40,207 nt of DNA from Corallochytrium limacisporum Hawaii (GCA_002811645.1 PDIP01000190.1:1-40207); one strand, 5' to 3'. Shown: positions 4,409-31,548, numbered from the stretch's first letter. Notes: generated from the letters alone by a model not told the origin. Numbers and translations: made by a program.

Positions 4409-5071
4409 ATGAACTTCAAGATTGCTGCCCTTGCCGCTGGCGCGGCTGTCGCCTCTGCTGGTTCTGTTGAAACCATCCCTGAGATTGTTCGCCAGACCAT
4501 TGCCTCCCAATCTGATCTGTTCACTAGCGAGGCTGCTCGCCAGCAGTTCCTCGAGGGCGAAGATCCCGTTGAAAGGCATACCGACATGTTCATTGGAAAG
4601 CAAACCAACTTTGGAAAGACCGATTGCACAGAAGCCGACACTGTCAAGAGCCCTGCCGTCGCTTGCGCTGTTTTCAGGCTTGAAGGCGACAATAAAGAGA
4701 TCATCGTGGACAAGGACGCCCGGATCGGTGGCACCTTCACTATTGGAGACCAGGAAACCGAGCTAAACTACAAGCTAGCTAACAACAAATATGCATGGAC
4801 CTGGAACATGAACGGCAATCACGCTCTACCCGACGATGACGCGACTTTCAGTTTCCAGATTGGTAAGGAAGGTGAAACAGCAGTCCTTGATGTCACGAAC
4901 GACTGGATCGATCCTTTGTTTGTGCTCCAGCTCCCCAACGACTGGCTCTTCAACGGCCAGCGCCTCTTCTGGTACCGCTCTGCCGGCGGCCATGTTAAAC
5001 TGGATAGCGTGGACGGTGAGGATCGGTTCTTGTGGTGCGGTGTGCTTGCCGAACCCAAGTGCCTCGCGTGA
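4409..5071 (+). CDS. Family A secreted protein A1 (220 aa, uncharacterised; subtype shared with A5)
   Basis: ATG-initiated ORF with signal peptide MNFKIAALAAGAAVASA; family motifs SEAARQQFL, FIGKQTNFG, C-x12-C, RLFWYR, WC-x7-C; CTCGTATTTAA box at -103 and AATAAA at 5112. Confidence 0.93.
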   Translation: MNFKIAALAAGAAVASAGSVETIPEIVRQTIASQSDLFTSEAARQQFLEGEDPVERHTDMFIGKQTNFGKTDCTEADTVKSPAVACAVFRLEGDNKEIIVDKDARIGGTFTIGDQETELNYKLANNKYAWTWNMNGNHALPDDDATFSFQIGKEGETAVLDVTNDWIDPLFVLQLPNDWLFNGQRLFWYRSAGGHVKLDSVDGEDRFLWCGVLAEPKCLA

Positions 5072-5111
5072 TGAAAATTCTTTACTTTTCATCCACAAAA
5101 CGCTATACCGT

Positions 5112-5117
5112 AATAAA
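5112..5117 (+). terminator. Polyadenylation signal AATAAA of A1 (also 11617, 12788, 17424, 23290, 31588)
   Basis: AATAAA 36-47 nt after the stop codon in six of seven A genes. Confidence 0.65.
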
Positions 5118-5321
5118 ACACATCACATTGACTACCCTCCAATGGGTTAATCTAGTTTGCATATAATATGGAGTAGTTCACCACATCCGCGTTCTAGATG
5201 CAAACGGGAAGATGACATGGTCCGGCGAGCATGGATGCCACTGGCCACCGATGATGACAAAAAAAAGGGTTCGGCCTCATGGCCTCGATTTCGCTTTACC
5301 CTTGGCCACAGCGTAGTAGGA

Positions 5322-5575
5322 GCAAGAGGCCCTTTGGATGTCGTCAACCTGTACTCGATTCCAAGAAAAAAGTTGCACCGTTCGAGTGTCGGCACCAAAG
5401 TGCTCTGCAACGACGCCGCAGATGCTAATCCATCCTTTCCCCTCGCTGTTTTTGGGGCTAGCACTTCTTGAAACGAAACGTTTGCTTGGCTGACGGACAG
5501 CAAAGTTACGCGTAATTGCTTGGTAAACCACCAAGACTCATGGTCGTCTAATAAGCAATGGTGGATCCGATAGGT
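5322..5575 (-). pseudogene. Internally deleted remnant of a B4-type family B gene with its 5' flank
   Basis: 5481-5500 TTTGCTTGGCTGACGGACAG is identical to 24551-24570 (B4 5' flank) and similarity continues to ~5570. 5341-5400 resembles B4 3' coding pieces (TCGTCAAxCTGTAC, AAGAAAAA, GGCACCAAA). Start codon and TATA-like box are lost. Confidence 0.7.
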
Positions 5576-5959
5576 CTGAACGCGGCCAGAAACAATATGA
5601 ACTTAGTGCGGCAGGTTTATGTTTGGGAAGGCTACAAAACTCCTTAGCCAACTTCGGAGACCACAGCACAATTAAAGTGCATGGAAAGGACATGCTCTCA
5701 TTTGATCACCCTTTAGAGGTTTAGTTTGAGTGGATAGAGAGCAGTGAATGGGTATGCCTGTGAACAACGACGGGCGTAGACACGGAGTCTGTACAAACCA
5801 CATCAATCTCTCCTTTTTTCAAACATTACACACATAAACACGTACTACAAACTCGTTACCACAATCGTCTATTAGACAAATAGTCAGGGTTCTAGGCCGC
5901 AAATATCAACGGCCGTCAAACACCTCTTATTTCGAACGGAAGTGCTTCATTCGTGACCA

Positions 5960-6154
5960 CTAGGCAGCCAGAGCCGCAAAATCTCTACTCAGTTGAAAAT
6001 AAGCCACATTCAACATCATAACTTGCTCGCCCATACCCGCAAGATCTGCGGACAGAACTTCCGGCCCCACTGGCTGTTGCGGCGGAATCGCAGGCGCGCC
6101 GGCGATCGCCTGGACGGCAGCAAACGCGAACACAATGGTCTTGATAAATTGCAT
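5960..6154 (-). CDS. Small secreted peptide precursor (64 aa, uncharacterised)
   Basis: Signal peptide MQFIKTIVFAFAAVQAIAG, Pro-rich linker, helical-looking C-terminus; GTATTTAA box at -102, the same spacing as in A and B genes. Confidence 0.72.
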   Translation of the reverse strand: MQFIKTIVFAFAAVQAIAGAPAIPPQQPVGPEVLSADLAGMGEQVMMLNVAYFQLSRDFAALAA

Positions 6155-6248
6155 GACTGAATATTCTCTTACTTTGTTGCTTGCACCCTTTGAACTTGGA
6201 TACTGATCAACTCCAAAGGATCCTCACAACCCAGCACGGCATGGCCAT

Positions 6249-6256
6249 TTAAATAC
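6249..6256 (-). promoter_or_regulatory. TATA-like box GTATTTAA of the small peptide gene
   Basis: At -102 from ATG 6154. Confidence 0.62.
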
Positions 6257-7551
6257 CTCACCAGGGCCCCTGACGGCCAGCTCAGAAAGGTAGGTGCAAA
6301 ATTTTGGCCAGAATAGAACAAATCTTGGTGACCACATCGTGGTTAATATCCGAAACCCCTCTTGCAAGCGTGACAGCCATGTAGCTCCCCCGGGAACAGT
6401 ACTGGGTCCTCCTCCCCCTCCCCCCCGCAGGGGGGAGGGCGGGGCGAGCTGGGGCGGCCCGCCGTACGGACGTTTCTGCGCCCTGCCCCACCTTTGGCCA
6501 TCTTCCGAATCCGTTCCAATGCGGTAGAATTTACTCGCCTGTTCTTTGACTGGAAGAATTTGTGTACACCAAGGCCCCCCCAAGGCAAGAGATCTGACGA
6601 GTGCGTTAAGTCTGCGCAAGAATTGCGTCAACCAGACCCGTCATTGGCGTATCCGGGCAGTCAATTGGGGAAGGTGAAAGAGTTTTTCCGGTCGGTTCCG
6701 TCTGAAGCATTGCTTGGGCCTGGTTACCACACCCAGATAGATTTTACAGGTGACTTCCATAAGTGCTGCGCAAAGCCAGCCAACATAGAAGTTTACACAT
6801 TTTGAATGTTTACAGTAAACAACGCTTGAAACTCGGCGTGACCAGATCGCTCGCTTTTTCCGTGGCGAGGAATGTCCCCCCTTTACGTAGACTTTCCAAT
6901 TGGGTAAAAAGCTTCCCAATATTTTGCCATCTAAAGTAAGGGATGTGCTCCCGTGTCCTGTGGTCCAACAAGATGACAACCAATCTATACTGAGCATGTG
7001 GCGAATTTTATTGGATTGCTCCGGCGGCAGTTGCTCTCTTAGGGCCTCTCTTGGTCCCTAAGAGGACAGCTTGCCCCGACCCCTTGTTGTTGTGTGGTGG
7101 TTGGAATCGCTCTGCTTCGTAGACAACGGTGACATACGGGGATCCTGGTCCGCTCGATCACCTACTCTACAGCGCGCGTGCGTCGTGCTTAAGTCATGGG
7201 TGAGTCCTCGTCGTTTCGCACCGAATTCAAGAAGCTGTGGTGTAGTTTTGTTGGAAATACGCCCCATTCACCTAAAGGATCCACACAGTACAGTACAGAA
7301 TATTCTATTCCCAATTTTAGCTTTGTTCCGGCTTTTCTGCCCAGCTCCGACTATGTGTGCGCAGACTACAAACAAAAAGACGTGGATCCATTGGGGCTCA
7401 ATTGTTTGCATAGTAGATCCGACACATGCAAGCAGGATGTCCATGCTACTTCACTGAGAGATGAATTGAATGTCTAGTACATATATGTATATGTATGCTG
7501 GGCGTAGTTGATGACCGTCTTGTAGTTGGAACATGTAGTGCACATGTTTAC

Positions 7552-8157
7552 TTAGCACTGAGGAATAGCGACATAGACGCAGATCATGTCGTAGATCTCG
7601 TTATATTTGAGTGGACCGAAGTTGTACGCAGTTGCTCGCTCACCCGAGCTGTAGACTTCGCCCGCGACTACGCTGTGCTTGTAATGGTGGTCCACAACTT
7701 CAAGTCCATCCGTACCCTCACCAGTAAGGGTGAGTGAGAATGTGTTCGCCTCATTGATATTCATAGGTTCCATGTTGTTCCAAGACAGGTCTCGATTACG
7801 ATCGTCGTGTTTGATTTCCCACACGTTCTCTCCACTCGTGAGCTTACCATGCAAGAGTTTAGGATTGCCCTCTACGTACATCATTCTGTTGTTGTCATCG
7901 TGATCAATAGAGTAGAGAGCACAGGCGAGACCTTGTTCCGAAACGGACTTTGCGTGAAGGCCGCAATAGTAGCTCTTCTGGTCCCCGATGAAAACATCCT
8001 GGCCTTCTCCACTGACGACAGAAGAGATGGGAGACATCCCAGTGAGTGCCAGCATACGCTGATTCAGAAGGGAGGTGGCGAGTTCGTTAGCGCGAGGGGT
8101 TGGATGCGCGGCCACAGCGGCAACGAGACCGGTGAGGATGATTTGCTTGAACAACAT
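7552..8157 (-). CDS. Family B secreted protein B1 (201 aa, uncharacterised)
   Basis: Signal peptide MLFKQIILTGLVAAVAA; motifs DVFIGDQ, C-x13-C, PMNINE, FGP, C-x7-C; four other intact paralogues in the window. Confidence 0.93.
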   Translation of the reverse strand: MLFKQIILTGLVAAVAAHPTPRANELATSLLNQRMLALTGMSPISSVVSGEGQDVFIGDQKSYYCGLHAKSVSEQGLACALYSIDHDDNNRMMYVEGNPKLLHGKLTSGENVWEIKHDDRNRDLSWNNMEPMNINEANTFSLTLTGEGTDGLEVVDHHYKHSVVAGEVYSSGERATAYNFGPLKYNEIYDMICVYVAIPQC

Positions 8158-8245
8158 TGTTTCTTGGTTAAGAAATAGGAAGCTTTCACGTAACTCCTTG
8201 GTATGCGACTACGATTCAAGGTCGCTTGATCAGTACAGTGGCACT

Positions 8246-8254
8246 AATAAATAC
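8246..8254 (-). promoter_or_regulatory. TATA-like box GTATTTATT of B1
   Basis: Same 9-mer at -96 to -98 in all five B genes. Confidence 0.72.
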
Positions 8255-8335
8255 CAGCCATACCACCTTCTTCCTATACTATGCTTACAGCTCCAGAAAA
8301 CTTTGCACATATTGCTGTTGCACTTGGATCCTCTG

Positions 8336-8414
8336 CATTAAGGTTGTCAAATGAGCATGTAGGCTCTAGATTAGAAACAGGAGTTAAATTTGGGCCAGAT
8401 TGACAACCTTAATG
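8336..8414. repeat. Perfect 15-bp inverted repeat with 49-bp spacer upstream of B1
   Basis: CATTAAGGTTGTCAA (8336-8350) and TTGACAACCTTAATG (8400-8414). Confidence 0.85.
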
Positions 8415-10783
8415 GCTTGATCGTCACACGCCAACGGACGTCTTCCACCCTTTCCCGGGCTCCGCATCCCTTTCCCTCCCCCTCCCCCCTCCCACCCCCT
8501 CCGGGGACGGGGCCCTTTGTGTGTCAGCCGGTTTGTTCCCTCCTTCCGGTAACCTGTCTCAATACCGGGACCCTCTCATGTTTTGCTGCACTCGCTAAGG
8601 CGGGACTTGTTCTGGCCCGTTTCGTGGGCGGCTGTTGGAGGGAGGTGGGGAAGGGGGGGGGGGGACCGAAAGAGATGGTCGGGGATTCGCACCCCACAAG
8701 GAGGGGAATGCCTCGGCTCTCACACACTCTGCCTAAGAAAGAGGCACCGAGACGGAAGGAAACACGAGTCAAAGGGGGAGGGATGCACACCATCCGAGGG
8801 TAGCGTTGTTCGTCCAATCCTTACAGGGTTGGTTTTGGATGCCACATGACACATGGGGAGAATGTCGATGGTCGATGCTATCAAATACCATGGAACGACT
8901 GAATGTAAATGGGTGTCAAGGATGGCCGTGTCATTCTATACAGGAAATCTAATCCGAGGGACCCTGTCGCATTGGATGCACCAAGAATATGAATAGCTTC
9001 ACAAGCGCTCCATAGTAGTTTACATAATGGAATCCCAACCGAATGTACTCAACGACCGGGAGATCATGTGCGGCTGGCGTCCTTCACTAATTTATGAAGG
9101 AAACTGGATTCCAAAGCAGATGGTGGTACGACACCTAGTGCAGCATACCCTTTCGTCACCGTTTGTCCAGATAGGCAAGTGGGAGTATACTCGAAAGCGA
9201 AGGGTGTATTTACAGTGTATAATGAGTTCGGTGTGTAGGACTTGTCTTCTCTCGCCCTGATGGGCAAGTGCTCTACAGTCAGAGATGAATAAAATGGTGA
9301 TCGCACCACATATTGCAAAAGAGAGTCCGTTTTTGTGTTTGTTTTGGCATTGCCCCGGAAGAAAAGGTACCACCATTTGGGTTCCTAAACATATGCGAGC
9401 CAGTCAGAGGACGCCTTATTTAGTGTCCGCTTGGAAGGGGAACTGGTTTCTTCACTTTCCCCATCCCCCTGTCCGACCGATGGTTGAGTGATTGGACCCG
9501 ACCCAGGGCAGAGCCCACCTCCATTAATTTTGGCAGATCTCCTTACTCCGTTAGGAAATATAGACCTTGCTCGAACGGTAAAACAAGAGAATATTTTTTT
9601 GGGGGGGGGGACCCTTATCTCTGCCTCAGTACTCAAGGACGAAGCAAACACATTCGTCACGCGACCGCTATCTTTTGGCTTTGGACAACCTTCGTGCAAT
9701 ATCAGATCCCGCATAACGGTGAGGACTATGGTTTTTTCGGATAAAGTACATACAACCGGATCCCGAGAACAACACTATGTTTAATAAGTTTGCAACTTGT
9801 TCCAGGATGGCCCCATGGCAACGGCAACGCGGTACTCACTCAATGGCAAACTGCCTGAAACGGGGCCTGGTCCTGTGGGTGTGTCCATAGTAAACAGCTG
9901 GCTTTTTTTTTCCTTCTTTCTTTCTGAAGAGAAAAACTGTTCTTAGGTTGTCGTTCCCTCCCCTCCGGAGATTAATAAATGCACGCAAGGATAGAATGCA
10001 CGTACTACGGCATCTTCCATCGCCAGCCTTGACATGTATTCCAAAGTTTTGGGTTCCGATCGTCTTGGGTATATGTTTGGTGAGCGTCTTCGAGGACATT
10101 GGAGAGCCCCGTTATGGTTCGGTGCTGCTTTCCCAACCCCGGTCCACAGCATCGAAACACGTGGTGCATTGGATGCTATATCGTAAGCAAACAATCCTTG
10201 GATGCTAGATGAGCCTCTCACAATATGGTGCAGTCGGTAATTGACAAGATATATTGTTACCATAGGATGGCTGCAGAAAAACACTATCATCGTCTCGTTA
10301 TCTGGCTAGCCTGCCGCCCAAAGTCAGGGGCGTTTTCAACAAGCAAAACAACGCAATGTGAGAGCATGATACCTAACATAAGGCGGAACACCTGAGCTAA
10401 TTGATGTCGAAGGGCGGTGGTGAAGTGTGACTCACCTGAAACGAAATGGCTAGTTTCTGGCTGCATGGCTCACCAACACGGTGCGCAGGCAGGTGGTACC
10501 CCGATGTCAAGATGATGTAATTCAAGACAGGGAACGGGAGGGGAGAAACGTTCGACCCCGGGGGAGGGGGGGGGGAAAGGACCTTTGGCAGTCGTTGTGT
10601 GTGTGGGACTGTTGGTGGGCGAGGTTCTCATCGGCACCTGGGAAAAGCTAGTAGCACACTATGGTCATCGGGACATTGATGGTTGTCTGATTCACCACCA
10701 TTGCGGTACAGTGGCAAGCAATGTGTGCAGCTGCAAAGTTAAAGAAACAGAGATTGCTCTGTTGCGTGCTATAGGTCACTGTG

Positions 10784-10794
10784 CTCGTATTTAA
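10784..10794 (+). promoter_or_regulatory. TATA-like box of A2
   Basis: CTCGTATTTAA at -100. Confidence 0.75.
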
Positions 10795-10886
10795 GCTCAT
10801 CCACTTGGTTGATCACCAAGAGTAGATCTTGATCGACAAGATTGGACCACATTGTCTGGATCAATTCTATCATTGCTAGTAGCACA

Positions 10887-11570
10887 ATGAACTTTAAAAT
10901 CGCTGCCCTGGCTGCTGCGGCCGCCGTTGCTTCTGCTGATCCTTTCGATGGTAATGCTCCTCAGGGCATCCCCCAGATTCTGCGCGATGCCCTCGCCCAG
11001 AACCAGGAAGCATTCGCGAGTGAGGAAGCTCGCCAGAAATTCTTGGCAGGTGAAGCTGATGGTGTTAAGGCGAGCAACTGGTACTTCGGCACTCAAACAA
11101 CGTTCGGAGACGGTGACTGTACTGACGCTTATAAGGTCAACTGGATGAGTGTCTTTTGCGCAGCCTACAAATTGGAAGGTGAAAACAATGAAGTTGTCTT
11201 GTACGATGACTTCGAAGTCGGTGGCCATATCGAGTTCGCAGAGGACAAGATCGTTGAGATCGACTACAAGCCCTCAGGAAATAATAACGGATGGGAATGG
11301 AACTTCAAGGAAAGGACCGTCAAGCTTGAAGGGAAGCAGGACTTTAAGTTCGTTATTCGTGTGAAAGATGCGGAAGATAACACAACGACTATCTACGACG
11401 AAACCAAAAATTGGCACGACCCTCTGTTTGCTTACCAACTTCAAGGGGGTTGGATTCTTGCAAGACAGCGTGCTTTCTGGTATCGTTACGGACCTAAGCC
11501 CATGGAAGACAGCGAAGACTTGAACATGTGGTGCGCCCTTCTGGCACAACCCAAGTGCGAAGGGATTTAG
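10887..11570 (+). CDS. Family A secreted protein A2 (227 aa; subtype shared with A4 and A7)
   Basis: Start moved from the ORF-track 10842 to ATG 10887 (MNFKIAAL), matching paralogues; box at -100; AATAAA at 11617. Confidence 0.93.
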   Translation: MNFKIAALAAAAAVASADPFDGNAPQGIPQILRDALAQNQEAFASEEARQKFLAGEADGVKASNWYFGTQTTFGDGDCTDAYKVNWMSVFCAAYKLEGENNEVVLYDDFEVGGHIEFAEDKIVEIDYKPSGNNNGWEWNFKERTVKLEGKQDFKFVIRVKDAEDNTTTIYDETKNWHDPLFAYQLQGGWILARQRAFWYRYGPKPMEDSEDLNMWCALLAQPKCEGI

Positions 11571-11988
11571 AAGTGATTCAGCGTGGCTTTCGTGTGATGG
11601 CTTCTACACAAATATGAATAAAAACACAATAAGAGAACTCCGCCGGCAATCCCCCTCGCGGAGACGGAGGGAAATGGATCGCAGTGTCCGCCTCAAAATC
11701 CTCCGCTTGTCGTGAGTCGCGGCAACCGGGAGCTTGGGGAGGGGGACCCAAGGGAGGGCGGGGGAAAAGGGGACAAGAAACGGGAGAAACACGGGGATGC
11801 TCGGTAAGAGGACTTGAAGCGGCCAGGAGGTTTCATCAGCCCTGGGAAATCCAGGTCTACGGACTACTGTCATAACAACCTCGGCAGTGGTGTGATCTGT
11901 CAACATTGTGGTATGGTAAGTTTTAACGTGTTGAGCGTTGTAATTGAGACAAGGTGCAGGGCCTGCTGCCGTACTTTGCGACTCCGAG

Positions 11989-11999
11989 CTCGTATTTAA
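11989..11999 (+). promoter_or_regulatory. TATA-like box of A3
   Basis: CTCGTATTTAA at -103. Confidence 0.75.
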
Positions 12000-12094
12000 G
12001 ATGTTGTACAGGTCTCATCACTCAGAGGAGGATCTTGATCAATAAGACTAGACCACACGGGATAAAAAAATTCTGTCGTCTCTAGTGTACAAAC

Positions 12095-12745
12095 ATGAAC
12101 TTCAAGCTTTCTGTCCTTTCCGCTGTCATGGCAGTTGCCACTGCTGGTTCTTCAGGCGACCATGCGTCTCCTGTCATCCCACAGCTCATTCGTAACCTCA
12201 TTGCCAGTGACCCCCACAGGTTCACCAGCGAGACTGCTCGCCAGCAGTTCCTCAACGGCGAAACGGACGACATTCATGCCACTGATCTTTATCTTGGCAC
12301 TCAAACTACTTTCGGGAAAGGCGGCTGCGAGGAGGCTGCTAAGGTCAAAGAGCCCGGAATCGGCTGCGCCGTCTTCAGCTTGGATGGTGACGACAAGGAG
12401 CTCGTCTTGCACGAGGATACAAGACTTGGTGGCTTCCTTACTATTGGAGAAGCATCGCTGGAGTTGAAGTACAAGACTGCGAGAAACTACGAGTACCATT
12501 GGTACATCAACGAGACCTTCCAGCTCGAGGCCGACCAGTCCTGGACCATCGAAATCGGAGAGGAAGGAGGGGAACCCATTACGATTCAGAAAGATTGGAA
12601 CGAAGCTCTGGTCACTCTCCATGTGAAAAAGACCAGCATGTGGCCGGAAACGCGCCTTTTCTGGTATCGCTTGGGAGGCTACCATCAACTCGCTGACAGT
12701 GACAGATACATGTGGTGCGCAATGATTGCGGAGCCTAAGTGCTAA
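12095..12745 (+). CDS. Family A secreted protein A3 (216 aa; divergent, unpaired copy)
   Basis: Signal peptide, SETARQQFL, C-x12-C, RLFWYR, MWCAMIAEPKC; box at -103; AATAAA at 12788. Confidence 0.92.
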   Translation: MNFKLSVLSAVMAVATAGSSGDHASPVIPQLIRNLIASDPHRFTSETARQQFLNGETDDIHATDLYLGTQTTFGKGGCEEAAKVKEPGIGCAVFSLDGDDKELVLHEDTRLGGFLTIGEASLELKYKTARNYEYHWYINETFQLEADQSWTIEIGEEGGEPITIQKDWNEALVTLHVKKTSMWPETRLFWYRLGGYHQLADSDRYMWCAMIAEPKC

Positions 12746-13000
12746 AGACTAGATTTTCCTTTTCGCCGAATGGATTGGACACCGTAGAATAAACAACCTT
12801 GCCAATGTTTTGCTACGTTTAAACGGGGACCAGTCCAGCTCTCGCTTCATGTACAAGTGATGTACGAGTTTCGAGGCAATACGCAGGACGTCATTGGTTG
12901 ACGATTGAAGTTCTGTGAACTGGCGGCCAATGGGTTACAATAATTCTTCGATAGTCTGGATCGTCCGACAATGCACCGTCCCTCCCGAAAGACTGGATGG

Positions 13001-13134
13001 CTGAGCTCACCGAATATGGTTCGCGATGTCGAAAAGAGGCGCGCATTTTCTGGTACCGCTTGGGTGAACCTAAACTCTTACCTGACAACAAAAACTATTT
13101 GTGGTGCGGTTTTTTTGCACAGCCTAAGTGTTAA
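13001..13134 (+). pseudogene. Internally deleted copy of family A gene A6
   Basis: 13001-13030 matches A6 26496-26525 (29/30) and 13040-13134 matches A6 26992-27086 (RIFWYRLGEPK...QPKC*). About 466 bp between them is replaced by 9 nt; no start codon or promoter box. Confidence 0.9.
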
Positions 13135-13395
13135 GATGTAGCTGTGGTGTAGTTTTGAGGGAAATACGTCGCGTTCCTACTAACAAATCTACACAGTATA
13201 ATACAGAACATTCTATACCCGCTTTGCTTTATTCCGACATTTTCCCCCAGCTCCGACTACAGCGTTAGAATCCGACACCTGCAAGCAGGATGTCGACTGC
13301 TACTTCGCCGACTGACGAAATTGAATGTCTAGCATGTATTATTTGCTGAGCGTCGTTGATGACTGCCGTGCAGTTGGATCATGTTGTGCAAATGC

Positions 13396-14013
13396 TTAGT
13401 CACACTGAGGAACAGCGACATAGGCGCAGACGATGTCGTAAGTGTTGTCATATGCGACAGGACCGAAGAAGTAGCCAGCTGCCCGATCGTCCCTGTCCTT
13501 AATTTTGGATGTGACAACGCTGTCAAGGTAGCTGTGGCCCGTAACTGTGATGCCAGGTGTGTCACTGTCACCATCACCGGTAAGGGTCAAAGTGAAAGTG
13601 TTTTCCTCGTTGATATTCATAGGGTCACTGTTATCCCAGGTCAGCTCCTTCCACTTCTGGTCGGGTGGAAGTACCCACTCGTTATCTCCGCTCGTGAGCG
13701 TGCCTTGCACGTATAGAGCATTGTGTTCTACGTTCATCATTTGGTGGTTGCCATCGGGTTTGATATAGTAGATAGCACACATAAGACCCTGTTCTGAAAC
13801 GTAAGTTGCCTTGTCGCCACAATAGTAGGTCTTCTGAGTCCCGATGAAAACATCCTGGGCTGTTCCATCTGCAACGGAAGCGATGGGAGACATCCCGGTG
13901 ATTGCCTGCAGACGCTGATCCAGCATGGACCTGGTGATTTCCTTAGCGCGAGGGGCTGGATTGGCCGCCGCAGCGGCAACCAGACCAGTAAGGATGATTT
14001 GCTTGAATGACAT
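13396..14013 (-). CDS. Family B secreted protein B2 (205 aa; close paralogue of B5)
   Basis: Signal peptide MSFKQIILTGLVAAAAA, four conserved Cys, family motifs; box at -97. Confidence 0.93.
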   Translation of the reverse strand: MSFKQIILTGLVAAAAANPAPRAKEITRSMLDQRLQAITGMSPIASVADGTAQDVFIGTQKTYYCGDKATYVSEQGLMCAIYYIKPDGNHQMMNVEHNALYVQGTLTSGDNEWVLPPDQKWKELTWDNSDPMNINEENTFTLTLTGDGDSDTPGITVTGHSYLDSVVTSKIKDRDDRAAGYFFGPVAYDNTYDIVCAYVAVPQCD

Positions 14014-14101
14014 TGTCGCTTGGGTAAGAAATAGGCCACTTTCTTTTCACTTCTTGGCATAAGACTACGATTCAAGGTCGCTTGATCAGTACAGTGGATC
14101 C

Positions 14102-14110
14102 AATAAATAC
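14102..14110 (-). promoter_or_regulatory. TATA-like box of B2
   Basis: GTATTTATT at -97. Confidence 0.72.
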
Positions 14111-16602
14111 CAGCAAACCCTCCTTCTTCCCATAGTATGTTTACAGCCCCAGCAAACCCTGAACATATTACCGTTGCACTTGGATCCCTGTATGAAGGTC
14201 ATCAAATGAGCATGTAGACACTAAATCGTCAACAGGTGTTCAATTTGTGCCCAGATCGACAACTTCAATGGCTTGATCGTCACACGCCACCCGTTACCTC
14301 CCCCAGTGTCCTGGGTCCGCGCCCGTCTTTCCCCCCTCTGCCGGAGCGGCCTGTTCCCTCACAAATGGCAATTAAACCCAGTACGGAACCGGTTGCTGTT
14401 CTCACAGGCGCGTGACTTTTTCGGTTGCCCGTTCGTCGGCGGTTGGGGCGGGCTTTGCATCATGAACCCCACGATAGGGCAGGAAAGAAGTGTAAGAAGG
14501 GATGGATGCACACGCACATGACCACGGACCATCCGAGGGTAGCGCTGCTTGTCCAATCTGTACAGGGTTAGTGTGGATGCAACATGACACACAAAGAAAA
14601 TGTCCATGGTCGATCCGATCCTTGCCAATGGGCCCACGGTAGAAGAATAAAATTGAAACTGCGCTGAGTCAGTTTGGCCTAGATCTCTAATCTGATGGAC
14701 CTATTGTTTTCGATACCAGCAATATATGATTAGGTTCAGGAGCGCTCTACGGTAGTCCTCCATCGCGGTACCATGGACATCACACGGGAGTGACAAACGA
14801 TACTCGAAATGGGAAATGCACCACGAATGCACATCGTCCATACCGTGGGCTACATGGTCGACAAGGCTTCAGGAAGGCGCCATAGCAACCTCAATTCAGT
14901 ACTCACGCAATGGTATTTTCGAATGCGCCATCTCAATGATGGCCCATTTGCGCCAGGAGTCCTCAGCGCTCCGGGTATCAATTTTTTAGTGTGTGCGATT
15001 TCTGACGGAGTTCCAGCCGGAAGGAAATTTTGCAAGGTTGTTGGACTATTAGGGAGTGGTCGGAAACACGTAAGCATATGTGTTTCGTTGCAAATTGGGT
15101 ACAAATATACTGCATCTGTACCGGTCATTTTATATTTAGCCGTCCACGGGCTGTCCCGTGTTCCGGTTGCATTCCTGTCCTGTTTCTTTTGCTCATGCTT
15201 GTTTAGTCCCTTGCTTTCTTCCTAATTTTTTCCAGCGTGAACCTTCCGGTCCATTCGTTTGAAATTCGGAGGCGACGGGACAAGGGTGTGGACAGCTCGA
15301 ACAGGAGTGACTGTTGTTTTTTTGGCGTTTCTTGTCGGGGCCAACGGACAACCCCGCCCGCCAAGGGAGGAAGTGAAGGCAGAGCCCACGATCTACTTGG
15401 CCGCTCCGCCTACTTCTTTTGGAATGAAAAATGCTGCGCAAAATGCAAAACATACCTTATTTCTGTGCCATACCTTAACCGCTCTACACAAGGACAGGTG
15501 AAGGACACATCGTCACAGTCCCATTGTCTCGTCCGGGGGTAGGTTTACGAAATATCAGATCCGGCAAATCGGACAGAGGATGCATGCTCTTTTTGGATAT
15601 ACCAACAACTGGATACCACCAACAAACTGGCGCTTATAAAGCTTACCACCGTTTCAGGATGGCCCCAAGGCATACTGCAATTTAATACTCAAGCAATGGC
15701 CAGCTGCCGCGAAGGTACACTTGCGCCGCGGTTGTTTTCAGAGGACCCAGTTGTCGGTGTTTGTTTTAAAACGCAATGTCTTAGGACGATCCGCCCACCG
15801 GAAATAATCTGTTCGCGCGGGCAAATGCCCTGACTGTGATTTTTTCAGTCCCATTCTTTCTATGGATTCCAAGTGTCTGGATTCCAGTCGTTCTGGGTAT
15901 GTTGAGTGGTTGTTTTCGAGCACACTTGGCGGCGGCCATGGTTCGGTGTCGAGTACCCCACCCCGATGCACAGCATCGGACAACACGTGGTACATTGTAT
16001 TTGATCGTATGCAAGCAATCCCTGAATCGTAGACGTGCCTGCCTTTCACATTATGGTGCAGCCGATAGTTGACTCGAATTATTGTTGTCATAGAATGGCG
16101 TTGCAGAAATACTTGGCATCGTCTCGCTATCTGGGATGGCCTGCCGCCAAAAGTAAAGGCGGCTTCAACGAGCAAGCAATGCCACACTAGAGCAGGAAAA
16201 CTAACATAAAGCAGAACACTTGCGGCGGTTAAATTGATGCGGAGGTGGGTAGGTGACATGTACAGCACCTGGTACAGGGAGGTTGTTCACTGGCGCCCTG
16301 GTTCCCCAGCACTGTGCTCAGGTGACTGATACCGATGTCAAGTACGATTGTAATTAAGATCGAGTACGGAAATGGGGAAAGGTTGGTCGGGGGAAAGGAT
16401 CTTTTGGCGATGGTTGTGTGCGGGAACTGTTGGTGGGTGAGGTTCTCATCGGCCCCTGGGAAAAATGAGTTGCATACTATGGTCATCGGGACATTGATGG
16501 TAGTCTGATTCGCCGCCATCACGGTACAGGTGGCAAGCAATGTGTGCAGCTGCAAAGGTAAAGAAACAGGGATAGTAGTGTTGCGTGCTATCGTTGCCTG
16601 TG

Positions 16603-16613
16603 CTCGTATTTAA
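16603..16613 (+). promoter_or_regulatory. TATA-like box of A4
   Basis: CTCGTATTTAA at -100. Confidence 0.75.
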
Positions 16614-16705
16614 GCTCATCCACTTGCTTGATCACCAAGAGTAGATCTTGATCCACAAGGCTGGACCACGTTGTCTGGAACAATTCTATCATTTCTAGTT
16701 GCACC

Positions 16706-17386: not shown

Positions 17387-17613
17387 CTCGGTGCGGCTTG
17401 TGTGATGGACACTATAACGCAAAAATAAATACACTTTTCGTTTTGACTACCCTCAAAGGGACCAATACGTTTCGTGCATCATGTGGTCGAATATGATTTC
17501 AGGTTTAAAGCACGATGGAAGTTACTGCTACTTCGCAGAGGCGTTTAAGATTGCCTATTGATGTGTGTACCGCACTTTTCTTAAATGATTAATTCGCAAA
17601 TTGCTCAGAATAC

Positions 17614-18249: not shown

Positions 18250-18338
18250 GTTTGCTTGTATAAGAAAGGAATGAGAAGCGCTAATTTTGCTTGACACAAG
18301 ATCATGACTCAATGTCTCTTGAGCAGTCCGGTGGATCT

Positions 18339-18347
18339 AATAAATAC
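18339..18347 (-). promoter_or_regulatory. TATA-like box of B3
   Basis: GTATTTATT at -98. Confidence 0.72.
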
Positions 18348-22597: not shown

Positions 22598-23254
22598 ATG
22601 CACTTTAAGATTGTTGCCCTTGCCGCTGGCACGGCTGTCGCCTCTGCTGGTTCTGCTCCTGTGAACCTCCCCGAGATTATTCGCCAGACCATTGCCTCCA
22701 ACCCTGAGCTGTTCACCAGCGAGGCTGCTCGTCAGCAGTTCCTCGAAGGCGACGATCCGGTTGAAACGTCTACTGACATTTTCATCGGAAAGCAAACCAA
22801 TTTCGGAAGCTCGGAATGCACTGTAGTCAACAAGGTCGTGAACCCTGCCGTCGCTTGTGGTGTTTTCACGCTTGACGGCGAAAACAATGAGGTCGTCGTG
22901 GAGAAGGACGTTTCTATCGGAGGCACCTTCACTGTTGGAGAACAGACACCGCTTGAGCTGAAGTACATGCAAGCAAACTTCCCATACTCATGGACTTGGA
23001 ACAAACTTGGCAGCCTGGAACTCTCCGCCAACGATCAGTCGTTCTCTTTCTCCATTGGTCAGGAAGGCCAAGACCCAGTCCTTAACGTCTCGAACGAATG
23101 GATCGACCCTCTGTTTGTGATCCAGCTCCCCTCTCACGGTTGGTGGAATGGGAACCGCCTCTTCTGGTACCGCTCTGCGGGCGGCTATGTAGAGCTGGAG
23201 GAAGACAAGTACTTGTGGTGCGGTGTGCTTGCCGAACCCAAGTGTGTGGAATGA
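22598..23254 (+). CDS. Family A secreted protein A5 (218 aa; subtype shared with A1)
   Basis: Signal peptide and family motifs; box at -101; AATAAA at 23290. Confidence 0.93.
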   Translation: MHFKIVALAAGTAVASAGSAPVNLPEIIRQTIASNPELFTSEAARQQFLEGDDPVETSTDIFIGKQTNFGSSECTVVNKVVNPAVACGVFTLDGENNEVVVEKDVSIGGTFTVGEQTPLELKYMQANFPYSWTWNKLGSLELSANDQSFSFSIGQEGQDPVLNVSNEWIDPLFVIQLPSHGWWNGNRLFWYRSAGGYVELEEDKYLWCGVLAEPKCVE

Positions 23255-23934: not shown

Positions 23935-24549
23935 CTAGTCACACGAGGTGACAATGGTGTATATGCAAGAGAGCATGTAAGTCTCGTCAAACTGTACAGG
24001 TTCCATGAAGAAAAATGAAAGCCGCTCGCCGTCATAGTCTTCGGTAACAACGCTGTCAAGGAAGCTCATGTTTTCAACATGAATAAAGGGCTGGAAACCA
24101 TTACAAGTGTCATCGGCACCAAAACTGAAATCAAAAGTGTTCGCGTCATTGACATCCATGGGCTCGTCATTAAACCACATCAGGTCTTTTACGTAGTACT
24201 GGTTCTCGTCAGTCAAGTCCCACGGGTTGTCTCCGCTACTGACTTTCCCGTACAAGCCTGCCGGGTTGCCCATAACATAAAACAGTCGGCCGTCGTCGTT
24301 GGCGTCAAGGAAGTAGAGAAGACAGCCTACAGCCTGCCTATTAACGTACTTTATCTTGTCTTGCCCACAGATGTAAGTCGTCTGAGGACCGATGTGGATG
24401 CGCCCCAAGGCCGAAGAGACAGCAGGCATGCCGGTGAGTGCCCTCAGATGCTGATCCTTCGACATCTGGATGAGTTTCACATCCCCATTGTGTGGGCTGG
24501 CAGCCACAGCCGCAACCACACCGGTCAAAAAGAAGTTTTTAAACAACAT
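23935..24549 (-). CDS. Family B secreted protein B4 (204 aa; 5 Cys)
   Basis: Signal peptide MLFKNFFLTGVVAAVAA, IHIGPQ, C-x14-C, PMDVND, C-x7-C; box at -97. Confidence 0.92.
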   Translation of the reverse strand: MLFKNFFLTGVVAAVAASPHNGDVKLIQMSKDQHLRALTGMPAVSSALGRIHIGPQTTYICGQDKIKYVNRQAVGCLLYFLDANDDGRLFYVMGNPAGLYGKVSSGDNPWDLTDENQYYVKDLMWFNDEPMDVNDANTFDFSFGADDTCNGFQPFIHVENMSFLDSVVTEDYDGERLSFFFMEPVQFDETYMLSCIYTIVTSCD

Positions 24550-26336: not shown

Positions 26337-26429
26337 GCCAATTCGTATCTCCGTGGCTATGTGACTGATCTCATACAATAAGGCTGAACCGTACTGTCTG
26401 AACGATTCAATCATTGCTAGTTCGCGAAA

Positions 26430-27086
26430 ATGAACATCAAGATTGCTGTCCTTACTGCCGGTGCGGCTCTCTTCTCTGTTGTGTCGTCGACACCTCTGAG
26501 CTCACCGAAGATGGTTCGCGATGTCATTCTCAACACACCAGGCATTTTCAAGAACGACGCTGCTCGGCAGCAGTTCCTTGCCGGCGAGAATGATGACCTT
26601 TTCGAGACTAATTTGCTCTTGCTCGAACAAACCACTTTTGGAGTCGGTGGCTGCACTACGGCTAAGAAAGCCACGAATCCTTGTGCCACTTGCATGGTCT
26701 TCAGCCTGGAAGGAGAGAACAATGAGGTTGTCTTCAACAATGAAATAAAAATTGGTGGTGAATTCACTATTGCAGGAAAGACCACTGCTCTGCGCTACAA
26801 GGTACCAACACATGGCATAAGCCTAGACGACTACGACTGGTGCCCAGGCGGTGGTGGAAACCTCGATGGCGACATGGAATTCTCTATTTCCCTTGGTGAG
26901 GAACAAAAGGACCCTACCTTCAAGGTGACTAAAGATTTTCACGATTCGTTATGGGCGTTCCAGATCAATGAGACGGCGTTTTGGTATGGGACGCGCATTT
27001 TCTGGTACCGCTTGGGTGAACCTAAACTCTTACCTGACAACAAAAACTATTTGTGGTGCGGTTTTTTTGCACAGCCTAAGTGTTAA
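26430..27086 (+). CDS. Family A secreted protein A6 (218 aa; 6 Cys)
   Basis: Signal peptide, AARQQFL, QTTFG, C-x12-C, RIFWYR, LWCGFFAQPKC; box at -101. Confidence 0.92.
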   Translation: MNIKIAVLTAGAALFSVVSSTPLSSPKMVRDVILNTPGIFKNDAARQQFLAGENDDLFETNLLLLEQTTFGVGGCTTAKKATNPCATCMVFSLEGENNEVVFNNEIKIGGEFTIAGKTTALRYKVPTHGISLDDYDWCPGGGGNLDGDMEFSISLGEEQKDPTFKVTKDFHDSLWAFQINETAFWYGTRIFWYRLGEPKLLPDNKNYLWCGFFAQPKC

Positions 27087-27347
27087 GATGTAGCTGTGGT
27101 GTAGTTTCGAGGGAAATACGTCGCGTTCCTACTAACAAATCTACACAGTATAATACAGAATATTCTATACCCGCTTTGCTTCATCCCGACATTTTCGCCC
27201 AGCTCCGACTACAGCGTTAGAATCCGACACCTGCAAGCAGGATGTCGACTGCTACTTCGCCGACTGATGAAATTGAATGTCTAGCATGTATTATTTGCTG
27301 AGCGTAGTTGATGACTGCCGCGCAGTTGGATCATGTTGTGCAAATGC

Positions 27348-27971
27348 TTAGTCACACTGAGGAATAGCGGCGTAGACGCAGATGATGTCGTAATTGTTGT
27401 CATATGCGACAGGACCGAAGAAGTAACCAGCTGCCCGATCGTCTGCGCCGTAATTTTTGCCTGCGACAATGCTGCCAAGGTAACTGTGGTCCGTAACTGT
27501 GATGCCAGGTGCGCCACTGTCAACGTCACCCTCACCGGTAAGGGTCAAATTGAAAGTGTTTTCCTCGTTGATATTCATAGGGTCCATGCTATTCCAGTGC
27601 AAATCCACCCCGTTGTGGTTGGGTGGAAGTACCCACTCGTTATCTCCGCTCGTGAGCGTGCCTTGCACGTTTAGAGCATTGCGTTCTACGTACATCATTT
27701 GGTGGTTGCCATCGGGTTTGATATAGTAGATAGCACACTCAAGACCCTGTTCTGAAATGTAAGTTGCCTTGTCGCCACAATAGTAGGTCTTCTGGGTCCC
27801 GATAAAAACATCCTGGGCTTCTCCACCAACGACGGAAGCGATGGGAGACATCCCGGTGATTGCCTGCAGACGCTGATCCAGCATAGACCTGGCGAGTTCC
27901 TTAGCGCGAGGGGCTGGATTGGCCGCCACAGCGGCAACCAGACCAGTAAGGATGATTTGCTTGAATGACAT
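27348..27971 (-). CDS. Family B secreted protein B5 (207 aa; close paralogue of B2)
   Basis: Start set to ATG 27971 (MSFKQ); family motifs; box at -96. Confidence 0.93.
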   Translation of the reverse strand: MSFKQIILTGLVAAVAANPAPRAKELARSMLDQRLQAITGMSPIASVVGGEAQDVFIGTQKTYYCGDKATYISEQGLECAIYYIKPDGNHQMMYVERNALNVQGTLTSGDNEWVLPPNHNGVDLHWNSMDPMNINEENTFNLTLTGEGDVDSGAPGITVTDHSYLGSIVAGKNYGADDRAAGYFFGPVAYDNNYDIICVYAAIPQCD

Positions 27972-28058
27972 TGTCACTTGGGTAAGAAATAGGCCACTTT
28001 TTTTAACTTCTTGGCATAAGACTACGATTCAAGATCGCTTGATCAGTACAGTGGATCC

Positions 28059-28067
28059 AATAAATAC
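28059..28067 (-). promoter_or_regulatory. TATA-like box of B5
   Basis: GTATTTATT at -96. Confidence 0.72.
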
Positions 28068-29326
28068 CAGCAAACCCTCCTTCTTCCCATAGTATGTTTA
28101 CAGCCCCAGCAAACCCTGAACATATTACCGTTGCACTTGGATCCCTGTATGAAGGTCATCAAATGAGCATGTAGACACTAAATCGTCAACAGGTGTTCAA
28201 TCTGTGCCCAGATCGACAACTTCAATGGCTTGATCGTCACACGCCACCCGTTACCTTCCCCAGTGTCCTGGGTCCGCGCCCGTCTTTTCCCCCTCTGCCG
28301 GAGCGGCCTGTTCCCTCACAAGTGGCAATTAAACCCAGTACGGAACCGGTTGCTGTTCTCACAGGCGCGGGACTTTTTCGGTTGCCCGTTCGTCGGCGGT
28401 TGGGGCGGGCTTTGCATTCCCCGAAGGAGAAACACCAAGGCTCTTTTCTACCGGGAGAGCAGGTCATGAACCCCACGATAGGGAAGGAAAGAAGTGTAAG
28501 AAGGGATGGATGCACACGCACATGACCACGGACCATCCGAGGGTAGCGCTGCTTGTCCAATCTGTACAGGGTTGGTGTGGATGCAACATGACACACAAGG
28601 AAAATGTCCATGGTCGATCCGATCCTATGCCAATGGGCCCACTGTAGACAAACAATAATGAAACTGCGCTGAGTCAGTTTGGCCCAGATCTCTAATCTGA
28701 TGGACCCTATCGTTTTCGATACCAGCAGTATATGATTAGGTTCAGGAGCGCTCAACAGTAGTCCCCCATCGCGGTACCGTATCGAATTCCAATCGATTGT
28801 GTTCTAACGACCGGAAGAATGTCTGCACTGGCGTCCTTCACTCATTGTTGAAGGAAGCGGACTCCAAAGCAGATTGTGGTACCACACCTTGCGCAGCAAA
28901 TTGTTGCGTCACCGTTCGTCCGTCCCCTCACGTAGAGGTGAAGAGTGTCTTTTACCGCTATATCTTGGCTGTGTAGGACATATCTGCAGAGCATTTGCGT
29001 ACGAGCGCGAGAGCAGGTTATGGGGCACAAACAAAAAACTCGCCAGCTATTGCGAAGTCGTCCGTCTTGTTTTACATATGCGAGGCAAGAAAAGATACGT
29101 TTTTGGTCAACTACACATGATAGCCAGTCACCAGGACCTATTTTATTGGCCGCTCCGGAGAGGGAAGAGCGCTATTTTGGGAGGACTCGACCTGAGCAGA
29201 GCCCACGATCTATTTGGCCGCTCCGTCTACTTTGTTTGTAATAAAAAATGCTGCGCAAAATGCTAAACATACCTTATTTCTTTGCCATACCTCCGCCGCC
29301 CTACACAAGGACAGGTGGAGGACACA

Positions 29327-29950
29327 TCGTCACAGTCCCATTGTCTCGTCCGGGGGTAGGTTTACGAAATATCAGATCCGGCAAATCGGACAGAGGATGC
29401 ATGCTCTTTNNNNNNNNNNNNNNNNNNNNNNNNNNNNNNNNNNNNNGGTACTCGTCACAGTCCCATTGTCTCGTCCGGGGGTAGGTTTACGAAATATCAG
29501 ATCCGGCAAATCGGACAGAGGATGCATGCTCTTTTGGGATATACCAACAACTGGATACCACCAACAAACTGGCGCTTATAAAGCTTACCACTGTTTCAGG
29601 ATGGCCCAAAGGCATACTGCAATTTAATACTGAAGCAATGGCCAGCTGCCGCGAAGGTACACTTGCGCCGCGGTTGTTTTCAGAGGACCCAGTTGTCGGT
29701 TTTTTTTTTTGAAACGCAAGGTCATAGAACGATCCGCCCACCGGAGATAATCTGTNNNNNNNNNNNNNNNNNNNNNNNNNNNNNNNNNNNNNNNNNNNNN
29801 NNNNNNNNNNNNNNNNNNNNNNNNNNNNNNNNNNNNNNNNNNNNNNNNNNNNNNNNNNNNNNCCGCGGTTGTTTTCAGAGGACCCAGTTGTCGGTTTTTT
29901 TTTTTGAAACGCAAGGTCATAGAACGATCCGCCCACCGGAGATAATCTGT
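29327..29950. other. Gap-flanking duplicated contig ends (probable assembly artefact)
   Basis: 29327-29409 = 29452-29534 and 29668-29755 = 29863-29950, each across an N-gap; single copy in the paralogous 15510-15811. Confidence 0.85.
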
Positions 29951-30767
29951 TCGCGCGGGCAAATGCCCTGACTGTGATTTTTTTCAGTTCCATTCTTTCT
30001 TTGGATTCCAAGTGTCTGGATTCCAGTCGTTCTGGGTATGTTGAGTGGTTGTTTTCGAGTACATTGGGCGGCGGCCATGGTTCGGTGTCGAGTACCCCAC
30101 CCCGATGCACAGCATCGGACAACACGTGGTACATTGTATATTTGATCGTATGCAAGCAATCCCTGAATCGTAGACGTGCCTGCCTTTCACATTATGGNNN
30201 NNNNNNNNNNNNNNNNNNNNNNNNNNNNNNNNNNNNNNNNNNNNNNNNNNNNNNNNNNNNNNNNNNNNNNNNNNNNNNNNNNNNNNNNNNNNNNNNNNNN
30301 NNNNNNNNNNNNNNNNNNNNNNNNNNNNNNNNNNNNNNNNNNNNNAGAGCAGGAAAACTAACATAAAGCAGAACACTTGCGGCGGTTAAATTGATGCGGA
30401 GGTGGGTAGTTGACATGTACAGCACCTGGTACAGGGAGGCTGTTCTCTGGCTCCCTGGCTCCCTGGCTCCCCAGCACTGTGCGCAGGTGACTGATACAGA
30501 TGTCAAGTACGATTGTAATTAAGATCGAGAACGGAAATGGGGAAAGGTTGGTCGGGGGAAAGGACCTTTTGGCGATGGTCGTGCGCGGGAACTGTTGGTG
30601 GGTGAGGTTCTCATCGGCCCCTGGGAAAAGTGAGTTGCATACTATGGTCATCGGGACATTGATGGTTGTCTGATTCGCCGCCATCACGGTACGGGTGGCA
30701 AGCAATGTGTGCAGCTGCAAAGTTAAAGAAACAGGGATAGTGGTGTTGCGTGCTATCGTTGCCTGTG

Positions 30768-30778
30768 CTCGTATTTAA
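30768..30778 (+). promoter_or_regulatory. TATA-like box of A7
   Basis: CTCGTATTTAA at -100. Confidence 0.75.
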
Positions 30779-30870
30779 GCTCATCCACTTGTTTGATCAC
30801 CAAGAGTAGATCTTGATCCACAAGGCTGGGCTACGTTGTCTGGAACAATTCTATCATTTCTAGTTGCACC

Positions 30871-31548
30871 ATGAACTTCAAAATCGCTGTCCTAGCTGCT
30901 GCGGCAGCCGTTGCTTCTGCTGATCCTTCCGAAAATAGTGCTCCCCTGCGCATCCCCAAGATCATGCGCGACGCCATCGCCCAGAACACCGAAGCATTCG
31001 TGAGCGAGGAAGCTCGCCAGGAATTTTTGGCAGGTGAAGGAGATGAGGCTTCTGCGACCAACTTCTACTTCGGCGAGCAAGCCACATTTGGACAATATGG
31101 CTGCACTGAGGCTGATAAGGTCGATTGGATGAATGTCTTCTGTGGTGTCTACACATTAGAAGGTGACAACCAAGAACTTATTTTGTACAATGAATTCAAA
31201 ATCGGTGGCTATCTCAAAATGGGAGGCACGACTCTTGAGGTGCCGTACATGAAGACACGAGATAATTACTACGAATGGAACTTCAAAGAGACGATGATCC
31301 CACTTGACTGGGTCACGGACTTTACCTTCGCTATTGGTGAGGAAGGAAAGGCGCTTACGTTCGACGAAACCAAAGAATGGAACGAATCTTTGTTCGCTTA
31401 CCAGTTCCCAGGCAAATGGATATTTGAGAAACAGCGCATTTTCTGGTACCGCTACGGCTCTAAGACCTTGCGCGGACATGAGACAGAGGAAGACCAGCCG
31501 CAGTTGTGGTGCGCCTTTATGGCACAACCTAAGTGCAACAAAGTGTAA
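30871..31548 (+). CDS. Family A secreted protein A7 (225 aa; close paralogue of A4)
   Basis: Signal peptide and family motifs; box at -100; AATAAA at 31588. Confidence 0.93.
   Translation: MNFKIAVLAAAAAVASADPSENSAPLRIPKIMRDAIAQNTEAFVSEEARQEFLAGEGDEASATNFYFGEQATFGQYGCTEADKVDWMNVFCGVYTLEGDNQELILYNEFKIGGYLKMGGTTLEVPYMKTRDNYYEWNFKETMIPLDWVTDFTFAIGEEGKALTFDETKEWNESLFAYQFPGKWIFEKQRIFWYRYGSKTLRGHETEEDQPQLWCAFMAQPKCNKV

Follow-up and report, generated by a model that had tools for sequence, protein, structure and literature searches.

Divergent gene pairs as the apparent unit of duplication in a new family of predicted secreted proteins from Corallochytrium limacisporum

Introduction

Why does one stretch of the Corallochytrium limacisporum genome carry, again and again, two related genes for small secreted-type proteins placed head to head? 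Corallochytrium is a unicellular marine holozoan that, like few other lineages in culture, branches close to the origin of animals; its secreted and cell-surface toolkits therefore bear on the origin of cell–cell recognition. The stretch analysed here, hereafter the window, is the whole of contig C100, 40,207 nucleotides (nt) long (GCA_002811645.1 PDIP01000190.1:1-40207), from the 24.1-Mb, 286-contig genome of C. limacisporum Hawaii. A preliminary description, made without database searches, had noted genes of two types, A and B, and had proposed that they encode the cognate subunits of a secreted heterodimer or polymer held as a variant repertoire.

Our comparisons indicate that A and B belong to what appears to be a new, lineage-specific secreted family, organised in co-duplicating, fast-diversifying two-gene cassettes. 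We further propose that the A and B proteins of one cassette cooperate extracellularly in a binding module of two parts, the cassettes forming a repertoire, a reading that we favour while rating it a little short of an even bet.

Results

A and B genes alternate as divergent pairs

Listing the open reading frames (ORFs) and re-extracting each gene from its first family-type ATG yielded 12 family genes in the window, seven A on the + strand and five B on the - strand, in the left-to-right order A1 B1 A2 A3 B2 A4 B3 A5 B4 A6 B5 A7 (Table 1). All 12 are uninterrupted single ORFs of 201–227 amino acids (aa). Every B gene of the window is divergently paired with an A gene, at distances of 2729 bp (B1/A2), 2692 bp (B2/A4), 4348 bp (B3/A5), 1880 bp (B4/A6) and 2899 bp (B5/A7), so that head-to-head gaps measure 1.9–4.3 kb, against 0.2–2.5 kb for tail-to-tail gaps. 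A profile search of the species' own genome brought the family to 29 complete or almost complete genes, with a few fragments besides; a maximum-likelihood tree separated clades A (12 genes), B (11) and the more distant C (5), each well supported. In the array, genes of the B1/B2/B5 clade of this tree always face genes of the A2/A4/A7 clade. Strands, pairing and the matching of the two clades had all been read correctly in the preliminary description. The nearest relative of A3 is the A gene of pair C91a.

The head-to-head pair is copied as a unit

The pairing described for the window recurs at other loci: we found head-to-head A/B pairs on contigs C91 (two), C143 (one) and C11 (one). Nine pairs are seen whole (five in the window and four on these contigs), and a probable tenth is split between contig C224 and the window start. 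Homology to the B3/A5 spacer runs through the whole 4.4 kb 5′ of A1, the first position of the window being equivalent to a point ~421 nt from the B3 ATG. On C224 (2,974 bp) there is a B3-like B gene, 402 nt of whose upstream DNA matches the B3 upstream region. As ~420 nt would be expected, the partner of A1 should lie just across the contig break; by this match, the B partner of A1 is most likely the gene on C224, which would adjoin the left end of the window.

Do partners share a history? The partner trees mirror each other: (B1,(B2,B5)) stands against (A2,(A4,A7)), B3 and the B gene of C224 against A5 and A1, and the B genes of C143 and C11 against the A genes of the same two contigs. In a Mantel test on protein distances, head-to-head partners reached r 0.87–0.88 (p ≤ 1e-4) and tail-to-tail neighbours r -0.18, on ~10 pairs, a number too small for residue covariation. 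A common history of duplication is enough to account for the correlation.

A recent duplication of ~4.5 kb, relating 13050-17520 (unit 1) to 27000-31690 (unit 2), spans exactly one pair. Its left breakpoint falls inside the 3′ end of an A6-type gene, a relic of which is still present (Table 1), and the right breakpoint of unit 1 lies 136 nt past the A stop. From the layout, the trees and these breakpoints, the divergent A/B pair appears to be the evolutionary unit of the family.

Two clade-C genes also stand head to head, across ~2.1 kb (C111:259011-262306), on a contig that carries a family fragment as well (C111:258647-258823). Divergent pairing may be older than the A/B split, or it may have arisen twice.

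Mature domains diverge faster than the DNA around them

What happens to a pair once it has been copied? In the recent duplicate, 3.8% of 2,346 aligned non-coding sites differ, against 9.8% of 1,296 sites in the two coding regions (odds ratio 2.7, p 1.5e-12), and in this respect the array does behave as the diversifying set of variants that had been supposed. The first 60 codons of the duplicate genes are almost unchanged and change is concentrated in the mature domains. There, the proportion of non-synonymous differences reaches 0.120 in B and 0.128 in A; compared with the 0.038 of non-coding DNA (p 4e-9 and 4e-11), this is a divergence 3.5 times the non-coding rate. The ratio of non-synonymous to synonymous rates (dN/dS) is 2.05 for the B2/B5 mature domains; gene-wide values for older pairs are 0.45–0.66, with 1.15 for B3 and the B gene of C224.

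Two simple accounts of this pattern were tried and set aside. Gene conversion from an assembled paralogue was considered as the source of the divergent patches, but no donor was found. A restriction of variable residues to the loops at one tip was likewise unsupported: loop enrichment is modest in A4/A7 (odds ratio 2.7, p 0.01) and absent both in B2/B5 and across clades. Three readings fit the data alike, namely positive selection on the mature domains, a local mutational or conversion process, and homogenisation of the flanks combined with selection against homogenisation of the coding parts.

Each gene has its own promoter of a common design

A TATA-type box lies ~95 nt before the ATG of each A and B gene. 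The A box, GTATTTAAG, is nearly invariant in 12 genes; the B box, TGGTATTTAT, is invariant in 11, and a longer form of it, CTGGTATTTATTRG, occurs six times genome-wide, each time at a B gene. The TATA box is found 15 times in the window, where 0.66 occurrences are expected, and 12 of the 15 precede the 12 genes. Both boxes are then followed by a similar TGATCA..CAAG block, and from this shared arrangement it follows that the A and B promoters are homologous. A further, A-specific element lies ~200 nt upstream of six of the seven A genes in the window; the module set out for A1 in Table 1 is present 5′ of A2, A4, A5, A6 and A7 as well and is degenerate 5′ of A3. Downstream, an AATAAA signal follows the stop by 36–47 nt in eight of the 12 A genes. 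Given these promoter boxes and AATAAA signals, the family genes are real, similarly built transcription units. No compact bidirectional promoter common to A and B was found, the core promoters of a pair being 2–4 kb apart.

The proteins are predicted to be soluble, acidic and C2-like in fold

What kind of protein do these genes encode? A and B are homologous over their full length in an alignment of 27–28 members, which have in common a hydrophobic signal-type start, four conserved Cys (presumably forming two disulfides), a conserved Trp and a C-terminal Cys-x7-Cys end. The long second strand leads into an acidic loop, also conserved, of the (D/E)-G-(D/E)-N-N-E type, and A and B each keep a distinct, clade-specific conserved N-terminal segment. 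The mature proteins are acidic, with isoelectric points of 4.05–4.93. Because they stop 0–3 residues past the last Cys, they bear no transmembrane or glycosylphosphatidylinositol tail; sequence features and direct reading agree in revealing no membrane anchor or hydrophobic tail in any family member. The signal-peptide-like start, four Cys, acidity and lack of an anchor given in the preliminary description were found again in all 12 window genes, whose isoelectric points are 4.2–4.9, with extra Cys in B4 and A6 (Table 1).

One A-clade gene (C91:15815-16459, - strand), 519 nt from the end of its contig, has a Trp in place of the third conserved Cys and three Cys in total. This gene may be decaying.

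AlphaFold2 models built with the family alignment reached a mean predicted local distance difference test score of 83 and a predicted template modelling (TM) score of 0.72 for A1, and 82.6 and 0.78 for B2. In both models a disordered leader precedes one to three helices (residues ~23-49), and the domain that runs from ~60 to the end is all beta, predicted as an acidic eight-stranded beta-sandwich of ~140–145 residues. Foldseek returned nothing under E 1e-3 (E of at least 2.5e-3), its best rows being C2 domains with TM 0.3–0.48. With VIA-align, the C2 domain of perforin (4y1s) came first for the A model (Z 8.2, root-mean-square deviation (rmsd) 3.4, 105 residues aligned) and for the B model (Z 7.0, rmsd 3.5, 107 residues aligned). 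A second-look search placed four perforin entries in the top five (Z 8.1–8.5; 105–107 residues aligned for the A model), and nearly all of the best 50 structural matches of the A and B models were C2 domains. Across the perforin structures 4y1s and 3nsj, the A and B models align over 100–117 residues with rmsd 3.1–3.5 and Z 7.0–8.5. Unmatched models often give Z under 8, and VIA-align calls the range of ~7–8.5 common where there is no true match; we therefore read these values as a C2-like sandwich and not as membership of the C2 family; on the models, such a fold is probable.

The family is an orphan

Does the family have relatives in other organisms? No Pfam family matched at permissive thresholds, and none of 28 members matched Pfam C2 (PF00168) even at E ≤ 10; a profile search of the Protein Data Bank (PDB) sequences, also at E ≤ 10, came back empty. 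HMMER profile searching, exhaustive over 1.84 billion cluster representatives, gave 22 family-type matches that look like the proteins of C. limacisporum itself. The three that are named are all C. limacisporum gene models, with EukProt identifiers beginning Clim_evm, a style used for C. limacisporum genes in 10.1101/2020.11.12.379420, and the family-type matches that were compared with the window or the genome proved to be that genome's own genes. The same search brought up long bacterial repeat proteins (InlB B-repeat, fn3 and similar; E 5e-21 to 8e-4), which we rejected as motif-level, repeat-summed matches because their scores add up many short stretches and because hhalign gave them a probability of 12–24% over 48–82 columns.

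Other routes led to the same place. Starting from A1, a word-indexed protein search recovered no proteins beyond those of the window itself. In the ESM Atlas, the best score by features was 0.81, to phage proteins and below the useful level, and the search by shape gave query-based TM scores of 0.29–0.42, with no relative among them. A metagenome scan with A-clade patterns produced 93 pattern matches, none of which was confirmed, and literature searches found nothing on the A/B family. That the family had not been recognised at first sight is therefore matched by the lack of any Pfam, PDB-sequence or cross-species hit. Among everything searched, it appears to be restricted to C. limacisporum and new in sequence terms, and within it A and B appear to be old paralogues of one orphan family.

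Spacers are mosaics, and assembly gaps lie outside the genes

The preliminary description had placed every pair across a homologous spacer. This holds for B1/A2, B2/A4 and B5/A7, where homology extends through most of the spacer; that of B3/A5 instead matches the DNA 5′ of A1, and the B4/A6 spacer shares promoter-proximal blocks only. Within the recent duplicate, the B2/A4 and B5/A7 spacers differ by a swapped, non-homologous block of ~600 nt (~14770-15380 versus 28790-29195). The B2/A4 version of this block is 72–74% related to 1809-2336 and 20196-20461, and the spacers are therefore mosaics. The idea of the spacer as a transposon was ruled out, an 811-nt spacer block being confined to three related spacers of C100. 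An Rfam scan of the window gave no match.

Could missing sequence distort the picture? None of the six N runs of the window (Table 1) touches an A or B ORF. The gaps at 29410-29446 and 29756-29862 are bordered by exact repeats of 83 and 88 nt (29327-29534 and 29668-29950); they look like overlaps that the scaffolder left unmerged and not like missing sequence, an artefact of scaffolding that is indicated by the paralogous B2/A4 spacer, which has no gap. By comparison with the same spacer, the gap at 30198 stands for ~132 nt. As all N runs are intergenic and two are explained as overlaps, the gaps leave the main finding untouched. Long G-rich or purine-rich low-complexity tracts, of the type GGGGAGGGG, occur in the spacers, for example at 8450-8500 and 20700-21100, and lie beside several N gaps. 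They probably caused the assembly breaks.

B5 is seen outside the assembly

None of the listed public runs is recorded as containing this DNA in RNA form. Two small public contig sets carry the same species label; both were compared with the window at 90% likeness, and one of them (run X2) is probably RNA. X2 contains an 822-nt contig, with a word depth of 107, that has the B5 letter at 36 of the 40 listed places at which this contig departs from B2; these letters and a 6-nt insertion identify it as B5. B5 thus exists independently of the assembly, and it is probably transcribed. A 300-nt contig of low depth in X2 comes from upstream of A7.

Discussion

How might such an array have arisen, and what could it do? 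The two paralogous types, A and B, go back to an inverted duplication of long ago, and the family has since multiplied as two-gene cassettes, each made of a 3′ flank, B, a spacer of 0.7–4.3 kb, A and a second 3′ flank. Whole cassettes are what is copied, whether in tandem or to other loci. Once copied, the mature domains diverge several times faster than the nearby non-coding DNA while the signal and N-terminal segments stay near-constant. We propose that the A and B proteins of one cassette are made together and act extracellularly as a binding module of two parts. If secreted C2 domains such as that of perforin are a guide, its target may be a membrane or another surface, bound in a Ca2+-dependent manner, and the set of cassettes would then be a repertoire of specificities toward other cells, whether prey, competitors or kin.

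Several observations weigh against a partnership of A and B. The two core promoters of a pair are 2–4 kb apart, each gene having its own. Unpaired members exist (A3 and a B gene on contig C33), and several C genes are also solitary. Mirrored trees and balanced numbers are expected, too, of neighbours that are merely copied together; since co-duplication would equally follow from segmental duplication with no functional link, we infer a heterodimer of cognate subunits only tentatively. B5 alone was seen in the two small contig sets, B2, A4 and B3 being unmatched in both, while the A7 coding region lies outside the reach of a comparison at 90% likeness. The C2 match is borderline in both structural searches (Z ~7–8.5, Foldseek TM 0.3–0.48) and lacks support from sequence profiles. 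In A4/A7, synonymous sites are also six times more diverged than non-coding DNA, so that gene conversion or homogenised flanks, and not selection on amino acids, may explain part of the divergence. Finally, a complex prediction for mature A4 with B2 gave no answer, the partner having folded poorly, and we count it neither way.

Would A and B not do just as well on their own? They may be independent paralogues in an ordinary lineage-specific expansion of secreted proteins, such as wall or matrix components or nutrient or ion binders, which act alone or as homo-oligomers in a layout frozen by the accident of one inverted duplication. We regard this as a serious possibility, though on the doubtful side. 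It would suit the full-length homology and single predicted fold of A and B, the complete promoter of each gene, the singletons and solitary clade-C members and the lack of support from complex prediction; ~4.5-kb duplication tracts carry both genes automatically, and the gene-wide dN/dS of older pairs fits relaxed constraint. Many protists and fungi are known to have lineage-specific families, arranged in tandem, whose small secreted proteins contain Cys and resemble effectors or surface antigens. The A/B family is like them in being an orphan with a signal peptide, a Cys scaffold, tandem arrays, high dN/dS and a conserved leader; it is unlike them in its two-type cassettes, its mirrored phylogenies and its holozoan host, which is described as free-living. 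Against independence, pairs persist down to ~30% identity at four or more loci, with clades of 12 and 11 genes, despite the gene loss to which relics testify, and the distinct clade-specific N-terminal segments and promoter boxes suggest different, non-redundant roles.

If A and B are indeed partners, they might represent a form of extracellular recognition not known to date, in which soluble C2-like A/B pairs form cassette-specific heteromers, diversified locally by targeted hypermutation or conversion that spares the flanks and used to discriminate kin, mates or prey. We think this unlikely, if worth stating.

A locus for self/non-self or mating-type-like recognition, in which each cassette holds a matched signal and detector and cassettes or alleles define identities, is less probable still. 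Such a locus might look like this array, with its head-to-head paralogous pairs, mirrored partner trees and quickly changing mature domains, and in layout and common ancestry of the partners the array matches the co-evolving MTA/MTB pairs of Tetrahymena (PMC7786109, PMC3608545), likewise head-to-head genes from one ancestral gene in a tandem array with pair-specific variable regions. MTA and MTB, however, are large membrane proteins, and their array is resolved by programmed DNA rearrangement in the ciliate germline, whereas A and B are ~200 aa long and predicted to be soluble, and every pair is intact with its own promoters. The tgrB1/tgrC1 genes of Dictyostelium (PMC11088635, PMC12745789) are also adjacent and paired, in an expanded family with beta-sandwich ectodomains and a fast-changing recognition part, and a hypermutable hotspot has been described for tgr genes, for which local hypermutability was proposed (PMC12745789). 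Unlike A and B, the tgr products are polymorphic transmembrane adhesion proteins with Ig-like (IPT/TIG) repeats, and their defining property is polymorphism between strains, whereas the present comparison covers a single genome. No A/B family member is membrane-anchored, as MTA/MTB and TgrB1/C1 are, and a literature search turned up no account of sex or of kin recognition in Corallochytrium.

Might the proteins be weapons instead? The cells might release them against prey or competitors as factors that target membranes or cause lysis, perhaps in binary form, and that dock by a perforin-like C2 domain in Ca2+-rich sea water. This would agree with perforin C2 as the top structural match of both A and B, with acidic proteins bearing signal peptides and with the fast evolution typical of conflict genes. 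The perforin C2 domain is, like A and B, exported and acidic. It sits in a multidomain protein; A and B are free-standing proteins that add four conserved Cys and a helical N-terminal segment, and the family has no sequence or profile similarity to C2. As the fold match is borderline and no pore-forming or enzymatic domain is present, we hold a role as weapons to be decidedly improbable.

That part of the array is an assembly artefact, with two haplotypes of a polymorphic locus placed in tandem, is very improbable, for although unit 2 (27000-31690) has three N gaps, two with exactly duplicated flanks, and the family is spread over several short contigs (C91, C224, C100), unit 1 lies in gap-free sequence (3956-20830) with sharp homology breakpoints, unit 2 joins its neighbours contiguously at either end, and the X2 contig matches B5 and not B2.

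The locus, then, resembles known paired and diversifying loci in its layout but with proteins predicted to be soluble and C2-like. If A and B are partners, it would offer a compact new model for extracellular systems of two components that diversify; if they are not, it would be a clear case of cassette-wise duplication and of an orphan family that arose and expanded in one lineage. C. limacisporum is stably transfectable (10.1101/2020.11.12.379420).

Coordinates and other features of the window

Table 1. Features of the window, in positions counted from its first nucleotide; family genes run from ATG to stop.
Feature	Position	Strand	Remarks
A1	4409-5071	+	220 aa; closest to A5
B1	7552-8157	-	201 aa; head-to-head with A2
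A2	10887-11570	+	227 aa
A3	12095-12745	+	216 aa; sole unpaired A in the window
B2	13396-14013	-	205 aa; recent duplicate of B5, 81% aa identity
A4	16706-17386	+	226 aa; recent duplicate of A7, 81% aa identity
B3	17614-18249	-	211 aa from the family-type ATG; head-to-head with A5; sister of the B gene of C224
A5	22598-23254	+	218 aa
B4	23935-24549	-	204 aa; 5 Cys; head-to-head with A6
A6	26430-27086	+	218 aa; 6 Cys
B5	27348-27971	-	207 aa
A7	30871-31548	+	225 aa
A promoter module (example, A1): element GATGGTTGTCTGAT	4200-4213	+
A promoter module (example, A1): TATA box GTATTTAAG	4306-4314	+	~95 nt before ATG
B1/A2 spacer	8158-10886		71-82% homologous to the B2/A4 and B5/A7 spacers
TATA box of B in B1/A2 spacer	8246-8254	-
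TATA box of A in B1/A2 spacer	10787-10795	+
B2/A4 spacer	14014-16705		gap-free; 94-100% identical to the B5/A7 spacer outside the swapped block
B5/A7 spacer	27972-30870		three N gaps, all non-coding
A6-type gene relic	13039-13134	+	last ~30 codons and stop; protein identical to the A6 C-terminus
N runs	3689-3955, 20831-20995, 29410-29446, 29756-29862, 30198-30345, 39609-39663		all intergenic
Small ORF	5960-6254	-	64 aa; signal-peptide-like start; inside the A1/B1 tail-to-tail spacer
2OG-Fe(II) oxygenase	32241-33335	-	unrelated neighbour
FkbM-type methyltransferase-domain protein	34798-35910	-	unrelated neighbour
GT31 galactosyltransferase-domain protein	36858-39023	-	721 aa; unrelated neighbour

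Three genes unrelated to the family lie 3′ of the array, all on the - strand, within 32241-39023. The small ORF between A1 and B1 has a family-type promoter, with the box GGTATTTAA ~95 nt upstream and then the TGATCA..CAAG block; it may be a cut-down family member, that is, a B-like gene, or a separate small secreted peptide.

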